Of a stretch of DNA of 64,000 nt, positions 9,601 to 56,169 are shown one piece after another. Position 1 is the stretch's first letter; each line of letters opens with the position of its first letter. Origin of the DNA: Asterias rubens. Lineage: Eukaryota. The notes under the pieces are model-generated. The model was given only the letters and a program-made list of their open reading frames with translations. It was not told the origin of the DNA and ran no database searches. Made by a program: the position numbers and the translations under genes. Location of the stretch: assembly GCF_902459465.1 (NCBI RefSeq), contig NC_047064.1:2976001-3040000 (forward strand), read 5' to 3'.

Positions 9601-12600
9601 CTTCATCAAAATAAAAATAATACAAAATCTTCAAATCAACCGCGGTTGCGCTCGTGCTCTTTGGATCAACCGTTGTTAACCCGGAAGCTTAAAAACAGCT
9701 CAACAAATTGTCAATATTATGTCAGAAAACCCTAATCTTCCGTCGATGTGTCGCGTCATGGCTGATCGTGTCATGGAACTGACTAGGTTCTTGCCTGCAT
9801 GATTGTTAAAGGGAGTGTAGTGTATAATACTTAGTAAATACTCAACACGTTAATGAACTTAGTAAAGAATATTTGAAAGCTAGCTGTTGATTTAATAACA
9901 TTGTGAGAATCGACTCCTTTGAAGTAGTTTAGTTTTAGAGAAATGGAAGAAGAATTTCCCCTGAACATTTTTAGTCCGAGAAATGCTCCATCTAACGCAT
10001 CTGAAAACACACAATTCTAAGCAGCAAGAGTATTTTTTTCTTGAATAATTCAAGAAAAAATACTATATGCTGCTTAGAATTGCAATTCGATGGCCAATTG
10101 AACCCAAGTGTTCACAGGTTTGTTATTTATGCATAGTTGGGATATACCAAGTGAGGATACCTCTCTTAAAAATTACCAAGGTGTATCCTGCTTTTAACAA
10201 CATTTCTTGATGCAAACCAGTTGCTGTTTTTATTATAGGCCCTCTATCAACAGCTACTTTGACACATTTTTCTACTGAAGACGATCACAGCATACTGATT
10301 GAAACGTAGAATTGTTACACTCTTATTCAGTACCGCCACAATCCAAGAGCGAAAATGGTACCGCGGCAAACCCAAGTTTTTTAAATTGTTGCATATTAAC
10401 TGAAGACGATCGTTACATACTGATTTATACTTTAAATCGTTGAACCCTTTTCCATAATCCAAATGAGCGAAAATGTACCGCGATAGATCCCAAACTCTAG
10501 AATTGCAAGGGTCGTGGGTTCGAACCCCACCCGAGTAACATGCCTGTGATATTTTTTTCACGTGGCTAGGGAAAGTACTGAGTATACAGTGCTAACACAC
10601 ATCGGTGTATGGGTAAAAACCAAAATTAATATTCTTTATCCCCGATGCAAATTTAACATCTATTAGATCCCAAACTGTTTAAATTATTGCATATTTACCC
10701 TTATGTTTGTTCTTTTAAAACAGAGCAGTTGCTGAGGAACTGAAGAAAGGTAAACCTGTGACGGCTGAAACGTTTGAGAGTGTCACCATTTACTTTAGTG
10801 ATATCGTTGGTTTTACAAGTCTCTCTTCAGAAAGTACACCGTTACAGGTGAGTATCATAAGGCGGTCGAGTAAATTACAGGGAAACATTGCCTTCAGACC
10901 CGGTGCTTTTGTCTATAAAAGTATTTGCTTTTAAATGAACAGGCTGTGGTTGGAAAAACATTCCAAAAGTAGAATACAATTATCCACATAAATATCACTT
11001 GAAATTGTGTGATTTTTGGTCTGCTTTTTTGTAGAACCAACTCTTATAAGCTCACAAATTGTGTGGCCTTATCCTGACAAAAGTAAACCTGACAAAGGTA
11101 TTGGTAAATAATAATAACTTGTTTTCTTTGTTCCATCGTATAGGTGGTTGATCTGTTGAACGATCTGTACACCTGTTTTGATTCTATCGTCATGAACTAC
11201 GACGTTTACAAGGTGAGGGAACACTTTCGAATTTTTAAGGCACTGGACACTATTGGTGGTCACTGTTAGCATGTTAGTATATAACGTTGTGAGAAACGGC
11301 TCCCTCTGAAGTAACGTAGTTTTCGAGAAAGAAGTAATTATCCACGAATTTGATGTCGAGACCTCAGAATTAGATTTTGAGGTCTCGAAATCAAGCATCT
11401 GAAATCACACAACTTCGTGTGACAAGGGTGTTTTTTCTTCCATTATTATCTCGCAACTTGGACGACCAATTGAGTTCAAATTTTCACAGGTTTGTTATGT
11501 TATTCGTCTGTTGAGATACACCAAGTGAGAAAACTGATCTTTGACAATTACCAAAGGTGTGCAGTGCCTTTAAGCAACTTGATTCATCTTGTGTTCAGCT
11601 ACCATTTTAGGATTTATCAAAAGAGAGGTTTATACATCAGCCGCTGCGCAGCCATTTTTGTTTATTTCCCATTGACACCAGTGACATGAAACCGAGACTT
11701 GGTGGTGAAAATAGGAAATAGGTCGGTTCTTTTCTCTCGCTAGAATGGGTATCAGTATTCATAATAGCAACGTCATAATGTGAACACGCCAAAGAAATAC
11801 TGTCAGTAGACTTGGACCTAATGTGCTGAAAACTTCTCTGCAACTATGCACTACTTGCTTTGAAAATTGCATTGCATTGGAAATTAATCACCACTGCAAG
11901 TGGTTGTTGAAGTCAATCATCTGCCTGGTTAACACCGTTAGAGGTCGAGCAGCAAGGCGTTGAGGCCGGGTATTTTATTACAATTAGGTGACTATTTCAG
12001 TGATAAAAACGAGTTAAGAATCCACCAACCGTGCAGGGATGGTGCCAGCAAATCCCACACCGAAACGGCCCTGGAACAAGTATCAATTTTCTTGCCTATA
12101 TACAAAAATGGCTGATCCCGATGAGCTACGCATCAATCCCATTACAGTTTAAGGTCATCTTCCTCTATTGCGTGTGCTGCTAAGATATTATTAACAGGAC
12201 ACCTGCGTTCGGCTGATATTCGGTGGTCGTTAGTAGTTAATTCAGAGACAATATCCTGTCAAACGTTAACACTATTCGGTGAGTGATCCCCGGTGGATTG
12301 CAAGACTTGATCACTATCGTGATACCGGGTTGCGGTGCCTGTATCCGGCGGCGGGTCTAGATCGAGGCGGTCTGCTCCACCCCTAGAGACCCCGTACTTT
12401 CTGTAGATTGAATTACAAGATAGATCGAATATGGGTGATGATATCCAAAGTGGTTTGTTTCGCTATTTTTGGTTGGGAACTAGAGAGAATTACTGAATCG
12501 ATCCGTTTTCTTAAGATTGTTTTTAAAGGTATTATAATTGATTGGTATAAGGATAAGACAAGACTAGTCTTTGACAATTACCAATAGTGTCCAGTGTCTT

Positions 12601-15600
12601 TGAGTCTGAAAGCTTGCTGATTATGAAGTTCATACTACAACCATTGTTTCTGTGAAATGAAGTCTGAAGTCATTCGAGAAAACTGTTTAAGTCACCTGGA
12701 AGTGGTATTTTGTCAAATAAAGCTTTTGTCGCTAAAATATGTGTTTTGATGAGTGGAATATGAATAAACAATTAACTAAGGTTTTGAAAAACTAGTTTCC
12801 ATGTTATTTACAAACTTGAAACTAAGCCCGACCCGAGAGGGCGCTGTTCGTGACGTCAATCGAGGCGCGATGAATCGCATTCAGTGCCAACACAAGATAG
12901 TGACGCTTGGCGCAAGCTGAAAACATGCCCTCAAAGTTGAACAATACCTGATTTTGTTCACGTTAAGCAAATGCTCCTTCAGGTTCGTTACGTCTTGCAG
13001 GTACCTTCTTCGACTTCCCACTTGCTGGGAAAATTGTTGGGATGGCTTCATGTTTTAGAACAGAACGTTTCTCTTCATGTCAAAATGTGTAGTGTATTCC
13101 GGATTCTCGAAGCACGACGGCTCGAAGTGTTTGCTGCACAGCGCTGGGAAAGACGTCGGACCGGACCACTTTGCAAACTGACCCCATCTTTAGTTGTTTT
13201 GCTGCATCCAGCAGCTATACACATGGTCGACATTGCCGGAAAAATGCAAGAGAAAACCTTTTTCGAAACGTACAAAATCTTGAATGTACATGTACTAGCA
13301 CGTACGTGTGTTCGATGTTCGATCGAGGCAAAGTCTGCCACACATCTTTATTTATTTTGTGTGTAATGAAGAATTGTTTAGGAGTTGTAGAGGCATATTT
13401 TCTCATTCAAAGTTGCACTTGACAATGTCTACTTGTCTCCAATAATAATATTAAAATAATAATATACACGCATGCTTCCTTTAGATTGGAAAAGGTTCAA
13501 TATTTTTTGATAGACGCGCAAACGCCCTTTTGAAAGTACACAGTACCAGCGAGAAAACATGTCTCTGGGGAAGAGGTTGAATCTCCTTTAAGTGCATCTG
13601 TTCTAATCAATACTCGCTGCGTTATTTTTACACGGACCTCGTAATGAAACGAGATATGCATGTATTCGATGGGGTCCCATTGCGGGTTCTTCAACAAACG
13701 TTATTCTGTCACCCACCCTCAATACGTTAGTGACAGTGTAAACACATCTATACGCGGGAATAAGGTTTCAAACGGTAATTTTATCGTCTGTTTGCATTGG
13801 GCAAACAAAAATATGTTTTCGGATATAAATTTAGAAAATGTCTGTATTGCAAACATTTAAAAAGCAATTCAGTTGCAACAGTGAGTCAGTGGTAAGGGGC
13901 ATATCTTGTGTCACCTATTGTATTTTATGAGCTGTGCTTCTTTTGTTCTGTATGTTGATCGAAAATACAAGAGCCTGAACGGTTCTCGAAACCTTTAGCT
14001 GTCGTTCAGAGTTCGGCAAGATATTTCTTGTCTTTTGGGATTCACATGGGGAGCAATGTTTTGATTGCATTGTAAAACACACCAATATTTGTTGTTATAA
14101 GTAAGCTGTTGTTGGTCTTTCAACAACATTTACGAATTGAATACCTTAATAAATCAGTGGAACAGAACTTCAAAACCCTTAGAGGGCAGGTACACGTTTG
14201 GTGATTGTCAAAGACCAGTACTCCCCCTTGGTGTATCCCAACATCAGCATAAAATAATAATCCTGTGAACGCTTGAGCTAAATTGGTCATCGAAGCTGCG
14301 AGAAAATAATGAGAGAGAAAACACCTTTGTTGGACGAATTTATGTGCTTTCAGATAGGAATAATAGACTTTTGGCTAGAAGTCTTTTCGTGAGAAATTAC
14401 CTCTTTCTCAAAATCTTTGCTACTTCAGAGGGAGTCGTTTCTCACAATGTTTTATACTATCAACAGCTCTCCAATGCTCTTCACCAAGTCAGTTTTTAAG
14501 TTAGTTATGTTTTGAGTAATTACCAAACATGTACCTTCCATTTAAGGGGTAACTATAGTGTACTCGAATGAATTTATTTTACTGGAGACGAGCAGAGCAT
14601 ATACGAAACGTTGAGATTTGTAAATGCGGATGGTCAGGTTATTAGCGTAGTGATATCTTCCCTCGCCTTCAATCTTTATAGGACCCGGTTCGAGTCACGC
14701 CGGGGGCACTATATACGTGAATTGGGTTTTCAGTCCCTACCTGATTGGTTTGGTTTCCCTAGTTAAATACTCTTGGGTTTTTCTTCTCATAAACTAAAAC
14801 TCACTTCCTTACTTCTTGGCGTATAAAGTTATTTAAGTTCGCTTTTCTGTTAGTCATTGGCTTCACAACAGAGTAGTTGAAAAAACAATGAAGTGAAAAT
14901 TATTCAAACCATTAAACAAAAAGTGTCTACAATCGGATTTTAAATCACCATATATGTTATTATGTAAATGGTTGATCACACAGAACATGACCACTGTCTG
15001 CGACTATTTGGTGAGCTCTACCAATCCTTTACAGAGCTTTAACTCCAACTTCAACGTTTCTTTGATGGATCGACCGAGTTTGTCTTTAAAACTGTTTGTG
15101 TTTGTTTGGTTTCAGGTTGAGACGATAGGTGATGCGTACATGGTGGCATCTGGCTTACCTGTACGGAATGGGGACTTCCATGCCAGAGAGATTGCCCGCA
15201 TGTCTCTCGCTCTTCTGAATGCTATCAAAAGCTTCAAGATTCGACATAAACCAGACAAAACGCTCATGCTGCGAATTGGTTTGCATTCAGGTAGGTTTAA
15301 TGAGTGGTAGTTAACCCTCTCCATCATGACCCCGCCACCACCACAAACAGCAGCTACAACAACAACAACAAAAGCAACAGTAACAACAACAACACTGAAT
15401 ACATATTGATAACATCTATATCAGTGCAAATCCTTCAGAGAAATAATGTCACATTGAATCAACTAGCTTTTACCAGGACCACCACCACCAACAACAACAA
15501 CAACAAAAACATCAACAACTTTAAATACTGATCAATAAAAATGTGTACCAGTACCAATCCTTTAGAGAAATTAATATCGTCAAATTAGATCAACTAGCTT

Positions 15601-18600: not shown

Positions 18601-20809
18601 TCCGATAACCGTACCTCGTGCGTAACGTAGCCACTCGTACGTGACTTTCACAAACACCTAAGGGTGCCGCGTTATACAGGGTTGCCGGGTGTATAGGCTT
18701 CAAACTGCCGAATGTGGTGTGGAGCTCAGGCTCATTGACAGGCTTCCAGAAGACCTGAGACTAATTTCACTGGCAGGATATAGCGACGGATGCACCTCCA
18801 AATTGGCTAGTTTGATGGTCATTGTCAGCCAAGGCCGAATAGACTTTGCCTGCGGGGTGATGTCGTTCGTGCCGTCACCTGCCCCGAGTTTCCGGCAGGT
18901 TGCGAGGCCTGAGAGGCGGTGATATGCCGCCCCGGGATTTTGACAGTTGCTGAAATGGTCACGGTCTTTCTCTCTACTGATAGATGACAACAATGGGTTT
19001 CTACGATTTGAAATGAAGCCTTCTTTGGTTTATAATTAGGCTTCCCCCGTAGGCAATCTTAGATCCTCCTAGACTATACCTGTTCCCAATCACAGCAACT
19101 GGTGTCAGTATTTTTTAAAGGGGACGTTAACTTTGCTTGCGGAACCATTCGATTGATTTAATCCTGTATAACTTTATAAAATACAACTTGCTAAACATTT
19201 AACTTCAAAATGTGATAACGTTTTTTAGAGATATCGCCCAAATAAAATGGAGCGGTGGGAATCCGTCATTGTAAACAAAATCTTAGTCAAACGTGTTATG
19301 TAGAAGTCTTTCTCATATTGAAATGTTTTTGAATCCCTCTCTCTAAAATCACATTCCTTTGAAGGGAATCGTTTCTCAAAATAATATACATTATCAACAT
19401 CTGCAGTGCTTATTACTGGAGGATGTTATGGTCATTAATTTTCTGTAAATTGTCACAGGTAAACATCACAGGTATACCTCCCTTTAACCAAGGTTTTTCT
19501 AATTCACCAGTAAACAGGAAAATATACATGTACTGTTATTTTATTGGTTTAATAATTTTGTTATTTTATTTCCACAGCTATGAAGATTCATATGAGCTCC
19601 TACATCAAGAAAATCCTCGATCTGTTTGGCACTTTCGTGATCGAACTCAGGGGTGAAGTTGAAATGAAGGTAAAATATTGTTACATCCAACCTCGTCCCC
19701 CATCACCACATTTACATACTATTTTCAAATTTATAGTCACTCTTTAGATATGATTTTGAAAATAGTAATGATTTTAAACACACTTTTGGGTGGCTTAGTG
19801 GACTGTTTTGTAACTGTCTCGTCTGTCCTCAGTGATAGATATTTTTTAGCACTTGTTTTACAAAGACATTTTAGAAAATGCATTTGTTAAAAATAGATGC
19901 AATTTCAGATGTGGGATCTCCATTAAAATTGTTGGCTTCTTTTGTGTGTTATTCACGAATGAATTGGCGAGAGAAAATAGATTTGACCTTTTGGGATTAT
20001 ATCGATTTTCAAAATAGAATTGCTTGAATATTAAATGACTCTTTATCCTGCATTGTCGAGAAGACGTTCAGAGCGCAATGACCTAAACGTTGAGCAGTAC
20101 GAACCGGCTCTTCTGAGAGCCATCACTACTCACAAAAGAGACTTTACATAGTCACTGTAAACCAAAGATCGGCGCTATACGATCTTTGCTGTAAAACCTT
20201 ACTTAAAGACCTGCTTGAACGAAAATGTCAAGTCGTGAACTTTGCTGAATTCCACTTAAAATGTTTTCGATGAATAAGGAAATCGAATCATATGATTCTA
20301 AATAGGTTTCAATTGTGTAAAAAAACAATCATTTTGTATGCCCTTGTCCAGAGCTTTTCTGCGAGATTTGCGAAAAGCCCCGTTACGTAATCACTCTCAA
20401 AACGTCATAAGTAGATAAAGCCGCTTTGTTGCAGCGTGGATGTATAACAAAGCAAACTCCCACAAATGACGTCAGCGGCATTGTCCTTTGACGCCCGCTC
20501 TCAACGGCAGAAGTGTTTTTAGTTTTTCAAAAAACCTTTAGGTAGGGGCCTGATTTTTACTCGATAATTACGAAAAGTTCAGAAGTGTACACATATCAAA
20601 ATTACATTAAAATGGTGAACAAGTGCATTATAAACAAGTAAAAATACCATTTCTGTTGAAAACATTCCGCTCAGGTAGCTGTTTAATTGGCTTTTTATCC
20701 GCTGTTCTTATTCCAGGGGAAGGGTAAACAGACGACGTATTGGCTGAAAGGAGAGCTGAAAGACAAGAACGGATTATGCGATTTTAAATATCAGGAAATT
20801 TCCGTGTAA
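3441..20809 (+). CDS. Receptor-type (membrane) guanylyl cyclase, NPR1/NPR2-like; 3' part of gene (8 coding exons, 5' exons outside window)
   Basis: Eight exons join in frame with GT..AG introns. They give the kinase-homology end ([12 protein letters not shown]), coiled coil ([24 protein letters not shown]), and cyclase motifs [46 protein letters not shown]. The Glu in ETIGD and Cys in YCLFGD are the established guanylyl-specificity residues. Confidence 0.96.
4792..5172. mobile_element. Kolobok-like MITE, unrelated interior
   Basis: TTAA|AGGAACAATACAGAGTTG ... CAGATTCTGTAACGTTCCT|TA imperfect TIRs. Confidence 0.55.
7404..7553 (+). CDS. Guanylyl cyclase exon (150 nt): coiled-coil/signalling helix, [50 protein letters not shown]
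   Basis: Acceptor tttcctcag|A, donor TAG|gtaaga; typical receptor-GC dimerisation helix. Confidence 0.96.
7826..8057. mobile_element. Harbinger-type MITE with CAG TSD
   Basis: cag|TGCCCAATTTCATGGC ... GCCATGAAATTAGGCC|cag. Confidence 0.7.
8248..8398. mobile_element. Palindromic MITE
   Basis: CTTAAACTGCCGTTT / AAACGGCAGTTTAAG and further paired arms. Confidence 0.65.
9806..10197 (+). mobile_element. K1 MITE, degenerate
   Basis: Diverged but alignable, ending aattaccaaggtgtatcctgcttttaa. Confidence 0.65.
10270..10700 (+). repeat. ~125-bp tandem repeat with degenerate hammerhead-like motifs (CTGAAGAC at 10275 and 10400), interrupted by the tRNA-containing element
   Basis: TTCTA-CTGAAGA-C-GATCA-CAGCATAC-TGATT-GAAAC-G-TAGAA; repeated GAGCGAAAATG(G)TACCGCG and TTAAATT.TTGCATATT. 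Confidence 0.65.
10497..10663 (+). mobile_element. 5'-truncated copy of the 258-bp tRNA-containing retroelement with 13-bp TSD
   Basis: TAGATCCCAAACT at 10484-10496 and 10664-10676; body nearly identical to the 49.3-49.8 kb units. Confidence 0.85.
10724..10847 (+). CDS. Guanylyl cyclase exon (124 nt): [41 protein letters not shown]
   Basis: Acceptor ttcttttaaaacag|A, donor CAG|gtgagt; contains the first metal-binding Asp (FSDIVG). Confidence 0.97.
11144..11212 (+). CDS. Guanylyl cyclase exon (69 nt): [23 protein letters not shown]
   Basis: Acceptor ttccatcgtatag|G, donor AAG|gtgagg. Confidence 0.97.
11235..11573 (+). mobile_element. K1 MITE, 22 bp downstream of a cyclase exon
   Basis: TTAA|GGCACTGGACACTATTGGT ... 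GTGCAGTGCCT|TTAA. Confidence 0.85.
12687..13345 (-). mobile_element. Truncated DNA-transposon remnant carrying the THAP pseudo-exon
   Basis: Left end TTAAGTCACCTGGAAGTGG resembles a TTAA-flanked terminus; internal GAGGGCGC and TGACGTCA motifs; second terminus not found. Confidence 0.5.
12948..13233 (-). pseudogene. THAP zinc-finger pseudo-exon, probably the N-terminus of a Kolobok- or P-type transposase
   Basis: [20 protein letters not shown] / (frameshift) [22 protein letters not shown]... / (frameshift) [11 protein letters not shown]...GAFA*REQNQ|gtattg. This is a C-x4-C...C-x2-H plus AVPTIF-type THAP signature, disrupted. Confidence 0.8.
14179..14545 (-). mobile_element. K1 MITE, reverse orientation
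   Basis: Reverse complement of the K1 internal sequence; TIR-like ends with TTAA at right. Confidence 0.8.
14631..14880 (+). mobile_element. tRNA-derived SINE, family S1 (V-core-like centre)
   Basis: Shared GGACCC.GGTTCGA and GATTGGGTTTTCAGTCCCTACCTGA with copies at 56170, 57405 and 62622. Confidence 0.6.
15116..15290 (+). CDS. Guanylyl cyclase exon (175 nt): [58 protein letters not shown]
   Basis: Acceptor tttggtttcag|G, donor CAG|gtaggt; second metal-binding Asp and guanine-specifying Glu. Confidence 0.97.
15330..15610. repeat. (AAC)n/(ACC)n microsatellite inside a ~130-bp tandem duplication
   Basis: Two AAC tracts, each followed by CAGT.CAA.TCCTT.AGAGAAAT...ATCAACTAGCTTTTAC. Confidence 0.75.
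16186..16382. mobile_element. MITE with 20-bp TIR
   Basis: TAGACTTGACTCAAGTCCCA ... TGGGACTTGAATCAAGTCTA. Confidence 0.7.
17702..17800 (+). CDS. Guanylyl cyclase exon (99 nt): [33 protein letters not shown]
   Basis: Acceptor tttctttctgcag|GT, donor AAG|gttagc; catalytic N/R and GC-specific Cys. Confidence 0.97.
19578..19669 (+). CDS. Guanylyl cyclase exon (92 nt): [31 protein letters not shown]
   Basis: Acceptor ttatttccacag|CT, donor AAG|gtaaaa. Confidence 0.96.
20203..20686. mobile_element. Kolobok-like MITE in the last cyclase intron
   Basis: TTAA|AGACCTGCTTGAACGAAAATGT vs ACATTCCGCTCAGGTAGCTGT|TTAA imperfect TIRs; internal TGACGTCA. Confidence 0.6.
20717..20809 (+). CDS. Guanylyl cyclase terminal coding exon: [30 protein letters not shown]
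   Basis: Acceptor gttcttattccag|GGG; GKG...TYWL motif; TAA stop at 20807-20809. Confidence 0.95.
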   Translation, partial: GKGKQTTYWLKGELKDKNGLCDFKYQEISV

Positions 20810-28678: not shown

Positions 28679-28761
28679 GTGAAACTTGAAGTTTTGCATG
28701 GTTTGAGTATAAATATTGTGAGGTATAAATATGTGTAATTCTCTTTCAGGTATAGTAGGCC

Positions 28762-28975
28762 TAGTGTTGGTTCTGAGAGGCGGTTGATAATTCAACAATT
28801 CGATCAGTATGCTCCGATCGTCTTCAGGTGACAACCCACAGTTTCGATAAGTCTGCTCTTGATGTCTTCAGGAGGAAGACTGGAGACGATCAGAGCAAAT
28901 TGATCGAAACATTGAGTTGTCATCCACATGTTCTTCTCAGAACCAGCACTACACATGGTGCTACCGCAAACCTCA
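28762..28975. repeat. Inverted arrangement of three degenerate hammerhead-like units (two on -, one on +)
   Basis: Minus: CTGAAGAC-GATCGG-AGCATA-CTGATC-GAA and CTGAAGAC-ATCAAG-AGCAGA-CTTATC-GAAAC. Plus: CTGGAGAC-GATCAG-AGCAAA-TTGATC-GAAAC. Outer inverted repeat TAGTGTTGGTTCTGAGA / TCTCAGAACCAGCACTA. Confidence 0.7.
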
Positions 28976-49334: not shown

Positions 49335-49795
49335 AAACATAGGATTCGAACTGCCTCTAGCTGCCGGGCAATCTCGGTAGTCTAGTTGGTAAGACACTGC
49401 TCTAGAATTGCAAGGGTCGTGGGTTCGAATCCCACCCGAGTAACATGCCTGTGATATTTTTTCACAGGACTCGGGAAGTACTGAGTATACAGTGCTAACA
49501 CACATCGGTGTATGGGTAAAAAACCAAAATTAATATTCTTTATCCCCGATGCAAATTTAACATCTATTATATCGTTGTGGTACCCGCTGCCAAAACATAG
49601 GATTCGAACTGCCTCTAGCTGCCGGGCAATCTCGGTAGTCTAGTTGGTAAGACACTGCTCTAGAATTGCAAGGGTCGTGGGTTCGAATCCCACCCGAGTA
49701 ACATGCCTGTGATATTTTTTCACAGGACTCGGGAAGTACTGAGTATACAGTGCTAACACACAACGGTGTATGGGTAAAAAAAAAACAAAATTAAT
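49335..49795 (+). mobile_element. Near-perfect partial tandem (~1.8 units, period 258 bp) of the tRNA-containing element
   Basis: Two units almost identical; flanked by AATAAAGAT (49291-49299, 49796-49804). Confidence 0.88.
49371..49442 (+). pseudogene. tRNA-like Pol III cassette (anticodon position AGA, short variable loop); second copy at 49629-49700
   Basis: D stem GTCT/AGAC, T stem GTGGG/CCCAC, B box GGTTCGAATCC, acceptor stem 5/7, anticodon stem 3/5; T-run about 15 nt downstream. Not a functional tRNA-Ser (no long variable arm, broken stems). Confidence 0.65.
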
Positions 49796-53030: not shown

Positions 53031-53927
53031 AAAGGAAACGCCTCTCAAGCCTGTAGATAAAGCGCTATATAAAAAAAAAGTTATTATTATTTTTTATTAA
53101 GAGAGGTATTGTTTTATTAATTGAACTTGATGTCATTTGCAGGAAAACTCATGTTGGACCTACATGTACATTAATGTACCCATTATGACAAGTGAGATAA
53201 ATTTTCTCCTAGTGCTCGTTGCTTGGTGCCGTAAACTTGTCCTCAATGTGATTCTGGTATTGTACAACAACAAATTGTCCAGTAAACATTTTGAGCTTCA
53301 AGCCCTTCGGTCTTGTGGATTTTGCCCCCGCATTCCAGCCTTGCATCATGCTGCATAATAAAACGTAGTTGTTTTGAAGTTTCTTCAATACATCATCAGA
53401 CAAATACAAGAATGACACTAGAAATGTTTATCGGCAAACATTATTAACTGACGCTCTTCTTGTTTGAACAGTGACAGCTTTTCATGACTCATGTTATGCT
53501 TCCTTGTAAAATGAGTCTTTTCTGAATAACATAGAAGGGCCATTAATCAAGTTATTAAAGATACATCATTTAATTTGGACATCTGGAAAGTACGCGTGAT
53601 ACACAAATTTGTTATTAAGATACATACCTTTTTTTTAAGGGAGACAAAGCTCAATGACACTAAAGGATGGACTTTGTATTATCTTCACATAAAAAGATGA
53701 ATCAAAAGACTTTTTTTTTTTACAGTAATTACTCAAACCTTAGTCCACCCTCTGTTTATGTTATTTGTTTATTAATTTAATAATTCATGCTATAAAGTGT
53801 CATGGTGTTGATAAACAAACAGTCACCATGTACTATGTGATATCACATACATGTTTACAAAAGAGCCACAGGACTTCCTACAGGCTCAGTTTGAACAAAA
53901 AGAAATGTGAAAGTGCAAAAACATTAA

Positions 53928-53969
53928 TCTCCTGAAGACTAGCAGAGTATACTGTTTGAAACGTTGAGA
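53928..53969 (+). ncRNA. Minimal type I hammerhead ribozyme motif 1 (GUU site at 53965)
   Basis: Stem I TCTC/GAGA, core CTGAAGA + extra C, stem II AGCAG/CTGTT with G10.1 mutated to T, palindromic stem III AACGTT. Confidence 0.5.
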
Positions 53970-54119
53970 CCAAACCGGCTCTTTTCAGAGCCACCACTCC
54001 TTCAAAAGAGATTTTACTCATGGTTGTACCCGCAAGTTTACTATTCATATTTATATTTATAGTTCCTCTTATGCAGAAACATTTGAACAAAAAGAAATGT
54101 GAAAGTGCAAAAACATTAT

Positions 54120-54161
54120 TTTCCTGAAGACGAGCAGAGTATACTGTTTGAAACGTCGAGA
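54120..54161 (+). ncRNA. Minimal type I hammerhead ribozyme motif 2 (GUC site at 54157)
   Basis: Stem I TTTC/GAGA, core CTGAAGA + extra C, stem II GAGCAG/CTGTTT (G-U pairs), GAAAC-GTC. Confidence 0.6.
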
Positions 54162-56169
54162 CCCAACCGGCTCTTTTCAGAGCCAACACTCCTTCAAAAG
54201 AGATTTTACCCTTGGTTGTTCCCGCAAGTTTACTATTCATATTTGTATTTATACATGTACATGTAGTTACTCTTATGCAGAAACATTGTGTCTCTTATAA
54301 AAATAGCACCTACATACGTTACCCTCGAATTTGAAATTGTTTTAAAAAGAATGTACAGTACCTTGCTTAAGAATTGCCCGGATGTACACACAAAACAAGA
54401 TACATGTACAGCGTTTATGGTTGGAGCCCCGTTCGTGCAAAAATAGAACATTTTTGCAAAATCAAGATACAATGTTTTTGCACCAACACAACGATATCCT
54501 TGCCACATGTTCACTAAGTGAAGACTAATTTGATCAATCATTTGAGTGATGGAAAATAATTGCTACTTACATTCTATTTTTGGTTTGATTCGTTATAATG
54601 TATGACCTGAGACAATAATTCTGCGAGTCATTACTTTAAGGGGAAGCAGACAAAGGAATAACATTGCCAAAAACTTGGTTTATTATAAACAAAATATTTC
54701 CATTTTTGTTATGAAAGTTTCATTCTTTATACCCATCATTATTTTGTACATGTATTTTATAAACTTCCTTCTAAGATTACATATTGCTCACATTTTTATT
54801 ACGTATATACAATTAGGAAAAAAAAAATCCTAAAAAATGATGGTGCAACGCAAGTTGGTAACACTTCAGATTAGATTTGAAATCATACCTGCTGGCGCTA
54901 TTAGCACGGAACGTGACATGGTTACAACTCAAAGTATTGTACGTGTGTGATCCCTGTCACACATTTTCCAAACTAAAAAATCTCAACCCTTGATTGGCAC
55001 ATCCTTTATTATTATTTGTTCAAAATATTAGCCAACTATCAAGTTGAAATAATAGCCAGGCAACCTATTATTTTCCGAGCCAGTAAACTCTCTTCCTTTC
55101 CCTAGTGATTACAATCTACCCCTCTCTCTCTCTCTGCCGCTCTTTTCTATATTAATGTTGCCAAGTGTACAATTCCCCCGTTGCCACCAAGGACCAGCTG
55201 TACACCTCTGCAGGCGAGGCGAAGCCCTCCCAATAAAAACAGCCAAAGCAAATACAATATGAATAAGGAGACCCCCCCTAGGACGCCTAGAAAGCCGTCT
55301 CTTATCCGTGCTGTCATCTCAAAGAGGAAAAGAAATCGTCCAGTGACATCTAACACACTCGGATGGGTTTCCCTCCCTTTGTTCTGAGAGTCTGGAGCTA
55401 CCTCATCAAGATGACAATGAACCGTCTCGGTTAAGATGATCATAAAAAAAAATAGGAAATTGATTTTGCAGTTTGTCTGGTGCGCCCGCCCACCGCATCT
55501 AAGGAGCTGTTACCACGTAATTGCATTACAGCGAGACGGGGGTATAGCTCCTTGCTTTATAATTAGGCAGTATGGTTAGCACCAGTGGAATTGGTAAGAA
55601 ACCAGTGGGGGACACACAAGGAGGCTCCTGAACGTATCCGGATGCGGTTGTCGGAGCAAAGCCGAGGGACCAACCACCTCGTCTACAGAGGAGTCAAATA
55701 AGACTGAGGACTGGCTCCTGTGGGTCTGGTTGTCATAAGTGATTCCGACGCCCATTTATCATTGACTTAATTTCTGGGACATTCAATGTCTCTTTTTGTC
55801 TGACTCTGGTGGAGGTGCAAAAATAAAAACAATGCAATGCCAGTATCTATTACCATTGTCATGGCTGGTGTATATATTGTGCTTTTAGCGAGGTGGGGAA
55901 AGTGTTATAGGCCCTTCCAGTTTCATTAAATCAGAACTTACGTCACTATATTGTGGATCAAATGAACCATCAAATGGTCTTTACATTGTAAGTCAAGTTT
56001 GTGAATTGTTATATTGCATTGTATGCAGGGTACTACAACTGTACATTACATGCACATAAACATTACTGTGAAAATTTGATATGTTTGTATTTATCTTTCT
56101 ATTTTGTAGGAATTAATTAGTGTAAACTGGTTAGCCTACCAACCGAAATGAACAGTGACTCTTAACAAG

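Follow-up and report, generated by a model that had tools for sequence, protein, structure and literature searches.

This analysis concerns a two-unit direct repeat at positions 53890-54285 of a 64,000-nucleotide stretch of Asterias rubens DNA (contig NC_047064.1, positions 2,976,001 to 3,040,000; hereafter the window), both units of which hold a minimal hammerhead ribozyme motif with a histone-type 3′ end signal close behind it. The locus most likely represents a single, extremely 5′-truncated insertion of a Penelope-like element (PLE), of which the last ~145 nt remain, flanked by an 11-bp target-site duplication (TSD) and later duplicated in tandem as a block. The window locus is an ordinary, decayed and silent copy. 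Its unusual part is the pairing of a hammerhead with a faithful histone mRNA end signal.

Layout and origin of the two-unit repeat

A direct repeat of period 192, with 1.9 copies and 94% matches, was found at 53890-54253 by Tandem Repeats Finder (TRF). Pairwise alignment carried the second unit on to 54285 and placed a 12-bp insertion within it at 54252-54263, so that unit 1 measures 192 bp and unit 2 204 bp. The tandem ~192-bp units described in the first-pass annotation, which had been made from the letters alone, were therefore borne out, the second being lengthened by its insertion. When one unit was used as a query against its own assembly, only unit positions 39-183 recurred elsewhere. 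This repeat core of ~145 nt is called element E below, and its two copies in the window E1 and E2 (Table 1).

The same anatomy is found twice over: 23 bp beginning with TGAAC, the upstream TSD copy GCAAAAACATT, the dinucleotide AA, element E, and the downstream TSD copy GCAGAAACATT. Upstream and downstream TSD copies differ by A/G, this difference is common to both units, and the duplication junction shows a 2-bp TT microhomology, which argues for an insertion followed by a tandem duplication at the DNA level. As the units have only one derived difference from the family consensus in common, the duplication took place soon after the insertion. A genome-wide search found the 34-nt core of the spacer at this locus only, and no head-to-tail junction between two elements was found genome-wide at ≤3 mismatches. 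A 120-aa open reading frame (ORF) on the minus strand, 53878-54240, was discarded as an artefact of the repeat.

Table 1. Coordinates of the two-unit repeat and its components (window positions)
Feature	Position	Strand	Description	Basis
Tandem unit 1	53890-54081	+	23-bp unique flank, 11-bp TSD copy, AA, element copy E1, TSD copy	TRF, alignment
Tandem unit 2	54082-54285	+	Layout as unit 1, plus 12-bp insertion	TRF, alignment
E1	53928-54072	+	145-nt PLE 3′-terminal region, 5 differences from family consensus, without 33-nt tail	
E2	54120-54276	+	Further copy of the element of E1; 7 differences from consensus plus 12-bp insertion	
TSD, upstream form	53915-53925, again 54107-54117	+	GCAAAAACATT	
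TSD, downstream form	54073-54083 and 54277-54287	+	GCAGAAACATT	
Minimal type I hammerhead motif 1	53928-53969	+	Predicted cut after 53965 (GTT); 10.1-11.1 = T-T	
Minimal type I hammerhead motif 2	54120-54161	+	Predicted cut after 54157 (GTC); 10.1-11.1 = G-T; stem I TTTC/GAGA	
Histone-type 3′ signal 1	53972-54018	+	Stem-loop 53977-53992, ACCA 53993-53996, downstream element CAAAAGAGAT 54003-54012	Rfam RF00032
Histone-type 3′ signal 2	54164-54208	+	Stem-loop 54169-54184, downstream element 54195-54204	Rfam RF00032

The repeat core is the 3′ terminus of a Penelope-like element

The connection between element E and a PLE came from a metagenome contig, L099, which is matched by the resident PLE protein (tblastn) upstream of an E-like copy. 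Its ORF, at 1341-2261, gives a Pfam GIY-YIG match and is followed by the stop codon, a 26-nt linker, element E and a constant tail of 33 nt; the parent ORF carries the C-terminal part of the reverse transcriptase (RT) and the GIY-YIG endonuclease. The same arrangement of ORF and element E is seen in five further contigs. Within the genome of the window, copies L033, L052, L026 and L013 retain 24-98 nt of ORF end plus linker upstream of element E. The lineage itself is present there at 90-93% amino-acid identity, mostly with stops or as fragments, and at C4:20848539-20849454 an ORF end is followed by the tail at 20849631 (agreement by coordinates). Because it is collinear with the GIY-YIG ORF, we concluded that element E forms the 3′ untranslated region (UTR) and the end of a PLE whose endonuclease is C-terminal, and that most genomic copies consist of the 3′ UTR only. 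The hallmarks of PLE insertions, namely an inverted 5′-truncated partner, a 30-40 bp tail at one end and a TSD of variable length (PMC8557442), are all displayed by the family. Together with the ORF link, they uphold the Penelope-type assignment proposed in the first-pass annotation.

A second, dominant PLE family of 921 aa resides in this genome, with the canonical order of RT then GIY-YIG. It ends in a minimal hammerhead of like architecture (GCCU, CUGAAGA, an extra A, a 5-bp stem II, GAAA, the palindrome AGCU and AGGC), placed ~510-560 nt after the ORF stop codon (L066-L094). Its protein has only ~39% identity to that of the tail-bearing lineage. The 3′ end of the 921-aa family lacks element E, and its 3′ region showed no histone stem-loop. 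The 33-nt tail matched the antisense strand of the endonuclease-coding region in this family only weakly (20/24), a similarity put down to chance.

Copies, ends and subfamilies

Element E gave 2055 first-look candidates, the top copies being 92-96% identical, and its family counts about 1,000 near-intact copies. Copies are either solitary or, for about half of them, arranged in head-to-head inverted pairs in which the minus copy always precedes the plus copy and the inner end is truncated to a varying extent. In being mostly single or paired on opposite strands, as derivatives of truncated PLEs, they resemble the minimal hammerheads described in PMC4209133. The segments of element E come in the order hammerhead, histone stem-loop with downstream element, ~75 nt of terminal sequence and, optionally, the 33-nt tail. 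This tail lies 3′ of one copy only per insertion, and the 475 tails found genome-wide all end at one base. Exact TSDs of 9-16 bp were identified at 11 of 43 insertion units, several of these being whole inverted-pair units. For most copies the 5′ end coincides exactly with the first base of hammerhead stem I (TCTCC), as in L003-L030 at 1501, and the 33-nt tail opens with the same five bases.

A sister family, F, differs from element E in its stem II (GATCAG/CTGATC) and its stem-loop (GGTTCT/AGAACC). It comprises 1,331 hammerhead copies at ≤3 mismatches, and 943 copies with the stem-loop and a conserved CATGGT; only 77 of the copies with the GGTTCT stem-loop retain CTGANGA. Its large subfamilies F1 and F2 have the core CAGAAGA, a U4-to-A change, and retain stem II, GAAAC, GTC and the stem-loop (e.g. 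G000:C1:76381-76422). In a second assembly, both E-like and F-like tails were present with canonical cores.

Relics of these families are found elsewhere in the window. The F-type hammerhead and stem-loop tail is represented by an old and decayed inverted pair, head to head, at 28722-28830 (−) and 28880-28952 (+), and the tail superfamily by three more decayed relics at 20058-20148, 10272-10339 and 14580-14616, the first of which retains the stem-loop GGCTCT-TCTG-AGAGCC and CAAAAGAGA. In an unrelated metagenome, positions 7353-7452 of L134 (contig Ga0126343_10004469) contain CTGAAGA...GAAAC GTT followed by a GGTTCT-TTTC-AGGACC stem-loop, which may represent this pairing in a different animal or have arisen by chance.

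The minimal hammerhead motif

In unit 1, stem I is formed by TCTC (53928-53931) and GAGA (53966-53969). The core CTGAAGA (53932-53938) is followed by an extra C (53939), then by the 6-bp stem II (53940-53945 with 53952-53957), GAAA (53958-53961), the palindrome ACGT (53961-53964) and H17, which is the T at 53965. The motif of unit 2 is arranged likewise, with its extra C at 54131. Both units therefore possess the core boxes CTGAAGA and GAAA with a NUH triplet (GTT or GTC), the unpaired nucleotide between A9 and 10.1, a short open helix I and the palindromic 15.2-16.2. Minimal hammerheads of metazoan PLEs have a 4-bp open helix I, one nucleotide between A9 and 10.1, a G10.1-C11.1 pair and a palindromic 15.2-16.2 (PMC4209133), and share with the present motif the CUGANGA and GAAA boxes and the lack of a helix III hairpin (Cervera and De la Pena 2014, PMC4209133). 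By these features the motif is a Penelope-type minimal hammerhead, for which self-cleavage is predicted from sequence.

The 40-nt consensus hammerhead gave 979 genome matches at ≤3 mismatches, 91 of them perfect, and the reversed control gave 0, so that the motif exceeds chance expectation by far. The consensus has the G10.1-C11.1 pair closing helix II, which is replaced in the window by T-T (unit 1) and G-T (unit 2), and it has GUC at the cleavage site; the window copies are therefore decayed family members. In these respects the first-pass annotation was accurate: it had recognised a minimal hammerhead in each unit, with stem I, CTGAAGA, the extra C, stem II, GAAAC and a palindromic stem III, had placed the cleavage sites at 53965 and 54157, where GTT and GTC indeed end, had noted the weakened 10.1-11.1 pair, and had supposed that the locus may be a decayed family member. 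The genome-wide consensus that it proposed as a check retains G10.1-C11.1 and the GUC site.

The conservation of the structure was assessed on 28 sequences from two genomes. The named structure is paired in 92.3% of cells, compared to 31-42% in slid controls, and changes on both sides were found at 8 pairs, most of which trace to few subfamily splits. Between subfamilies, stem II shows a compensatory change from G-U to U-A, and the hammerhead and stem-loop modules are better kept than the linkers.

A histone-type 3′ end signal follows the hammerhead

The stem-loop, which the first-pass annotation had overlooked in both units together with its downstream element, begins 11 nt past the predicted hammerhead cut. 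From 5′ to 3′, the signal consists of GGCTCT-TTTC-AGAGCC, ACCA, 6 nt, and the purine-rich CAAAAGAGAT; the 6-bp stem and 4-nt loop fit GGYYYU-UHUN-ARRRCC. With the Rfam Histone3 model (RF00032), whose gathering score is 34, unit 1 obtained 36.7 bits, above this score, unit 2 32.2 bits, just below it, and the consensus copy 35.4 bits. The element CAAAAGAGAT lies 10 nt beyond the stem, at a place where the histone genes of the host, found by Pfam PF00125 and Rfam, carry TTCAAAAAAGAGAT. Flank, stem-loop, spacing and downstream element all match those of host histone 3′ ends (H2A, H2B, H3), and a weak similarity to the histone H2A 3′ flank runs on beyond the downstream element. Between subfamilies the stem-loop shows a compensatory change from C-G to U-A, and C-A mismatches were not encountered. 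The AGAGA core of the downstream element stands at a constant spacing from the stem throughout the subfamilies, the second genome included.

The signal thus resembles the 3′ end of replication-dependent histone mRNAs (RF00032 plus U7-binding element) in its GGCUCU-UUUC-AGAGCC, its ACCA, its purine-rich element and the spacing of these parts. Unlike a histone mRNA end, it comes after a retrotransposon ORF, no histone ORF being present upstream, its copies lie scattered in their thousands, and its processing by U7 and SLBP is putative. Within the parent element, ~76 nt separate the stop codon from the start of the stem-loop. PLE termini with minimal hammerheads have been described before. Those of PMC4209133 differ from the present ones, where a complete histone stem-loop and downstream element stand 11 nt past the cleavage site. 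We found no report of a hammerhead fused to a histone stem-loop and downstream element, nor of a histone stem-loop in any PLE or retrozyme, in the literature searched (subscription journals were outside its scope).

RNA evidence

Three raw RNA runs were examined. They may derive from a related species, as a loose-end consensus upstream of the element in the reads is not in this genome, and they would lose small RNAs. In these runs the unique flanks of the locus have zero depth. Reads covering element E come from other copies, in near-equal amounts for the two orientations, and 93-97% of them enter unrelated flanks. No read ends were seen at 53996, after ACCA. Nor were circle-type or unit-length joints seen, the libraries being unsuited to RNAs of ~190 nt.

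A possible joint mechanism

We tentatively propose a mechanism in which both motifs take part, and consider it possible, though short of probable. In active elements the hammerhead would act as a dimer in multi-copy transcripts and trim the PLE RNA, dimeric action of minimal hammerheads having already been proposed for PLEs (PMC4209133). The histone signal would give the coding transcripts a non-polyadenylated, SLBP/U7-dependent 3′ end, as in histone mRNAs, and unprocessed read-through RNA would serve as the template for target-primed reverse transcription.

Several observations weigh against this proposal. The Rfam hammerhead models gave no match, at E values up to 10, to the window copies or to the consensus copy; such models presuppose a hairpin on helix III. 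A pair between the extra C and G12 can lengthen stem II in the predicted minimum-energy fold. Genomic copies show no accumulation of 5′ ends at the hammerhead cleavage site, and the 5′ end that they do prefer is unexplained by random truncation. Genomic copies continue ~75 nt beyond the histone cleavage site, which means that the transposition template is not the histone-processed RNA. Concerning RNA, no pile-up of read starts or ends was found at the hammerhead sites (53965, 54157) or at the stem-loop sites in the three runs, which would not reveal small or rare RNAs, and the equal coverage of both strands suggests passive read-through. Finally, subfamilies F1 and F2 carry the U4-to-A change and yet count roughly at least 850 copies. 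Core changes usually cripple hammerheads (PMC3088659). As the largest sister subfamilies have this one, canonical hammerhead cleavage seems to be dispensable for the spread of the family.

A further view, which we hold to be unlikely, is that this PLE lineage mimics replication-dependent histone mRNAs, with the hammerhead detaching the signal and the tail copies acting as decoys. With the SLBP/U7 signal ~76 nt after the ORF, the coding transcript would lack a poly(A) tail and be tied to S phase. The hammerhead, 11 nt upstream of the stem-loop, could detach the histone signal, or release an SLBP-binding RNA of ~31 nt. If this were true, the thousands of dispersed tail copies would supply host transcripts with ectopic histone-type processing sites or with decoys for SLBP.

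A minimal hammerhead directly before a host-type histone signal in a PLE 3′ UTR provides a concrete and testable model for the role of hammerheads in endonuclease-bearing PLEs and for the formation of PLE transcript ends, and would be an unreported route by which a retroelement borrows an RNA-processing pathway of its host. The model turns on three points: whether the transcript ends through U7 and SLBP, whether the ribozyme takes that end off, and whether the element can do without both, as suggested by the U4-to-A subfamilies. An internal RNA polymerase III promoter was also considered, and rejected by sequence reasoning only, because the stem-loop holds a TTTT run that would terminate this polymerase.

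Alternative explanations

The dimer could be a working retrozyme, i. e. a non-LTR (long terminal repeat) element in which double-hammerhead cleavage at 53965 and 54157, followed by ligation, would give a ~192-nt circle propagating the family; the first-pass annotation had suggested that transcription through the dimer could release a ~192-nt monomer able to circularise. The two hammerhead motifs do lie on the same strand, 192 nt apart, and the palindromic ACGU could form an intermolecular helix III of 4 bp. Retrozymes are, besides, thought to originate from PLE terminal repeats, and metazoan non-LTR retrozymes share with this locus short AT-rich units, type I hammerheads (Cervera and de la Pena 2020, PMC7229834; Li et al. 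2026 preprint), a kinship to PLE terminal regions, and two same-strand copies that could act as a double hammerhead (PMC7229834). We nevertheless regard this reading as very improbable. The 192-bp period was found to reflect a local DNA duplication that includes the 23-bp unique flank and the 11-bp TSD, so that a retrozyme unit would have to include 38 bp unique in the genome plus the TSD of its own insertion. Unlike non-LTR retrozymes, the family is not arranged in head-to-tail arrays, as attested by the absence of any such junction genome-wide, and its stem I is open, without the contacts between loop 1 and loop 2 of retrozyme hammerheads. The 10.1-11.1 pair is damaged in both window copies. 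The zero RNA depth of the unique flanks also argues against it, as does the absence, within the limits of the three runs, of unit-length or circular RNA; for the same want of circle-type joints and end pile-ups, the ~192-nt monomer able to circularise did not find support. Less credible still is a foldback or MITE-type (miniature inverted-repeat transposable element) DNA transposon. Head-to-head inverted pairs of ~145 bp are frequent, about half of the copies, as expected for such an element, but their inner ends are variably truncated, their TSDs (9-16 bp) vary in length, the tail is at one end only, many copies are solitary, and the element is collinear with an RT/GIY-YIG ORF. These are traits of a PLE and not of a transposase-driven element, and the reading was rejected.

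A truncated PLE insertion being retained as the origin of the locus, there is the question of whether its two motifs do anything. They could be inert passengers: an ancestral PLE would have captured a piece of the 3′ flank of a histone gene, neither motif would process RNA, and both would persist through shared descent only. The good spread of the U4-to-A subfamilies speaks for this, and so do the success of PLE clades devoid of hammerheads (PMC8557442), the poor cleavage in vitro of published minimal hammerheads (PMC4209133), the lack of RNA ends at either site, and the extension of the weak H2A 3′-flank similarity beyond the downstream element. On the other hand, mere descent accounts poorly for modules better kept than their linkers, for compensatory changes on both sides of stem II and of the stem-loop without any C-A, and for an AGAGA core whose spacing is fixed across all subfamilies and the second genome. 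We take inert passengers to be somewhat unlikely, and give more weight to the joint mechanism of hammerhead trimming, histone-type 3′ end and read-through template.

Other observations in the window

Two identical tRNA-like matches, with an Rfam tRNA score of 48 bits each, are located at 49371-49443 and 49629-49701 on the plus strand, 258 bp apart. They are apparently parts of a tRNA-bearing unit arranged in tandem.

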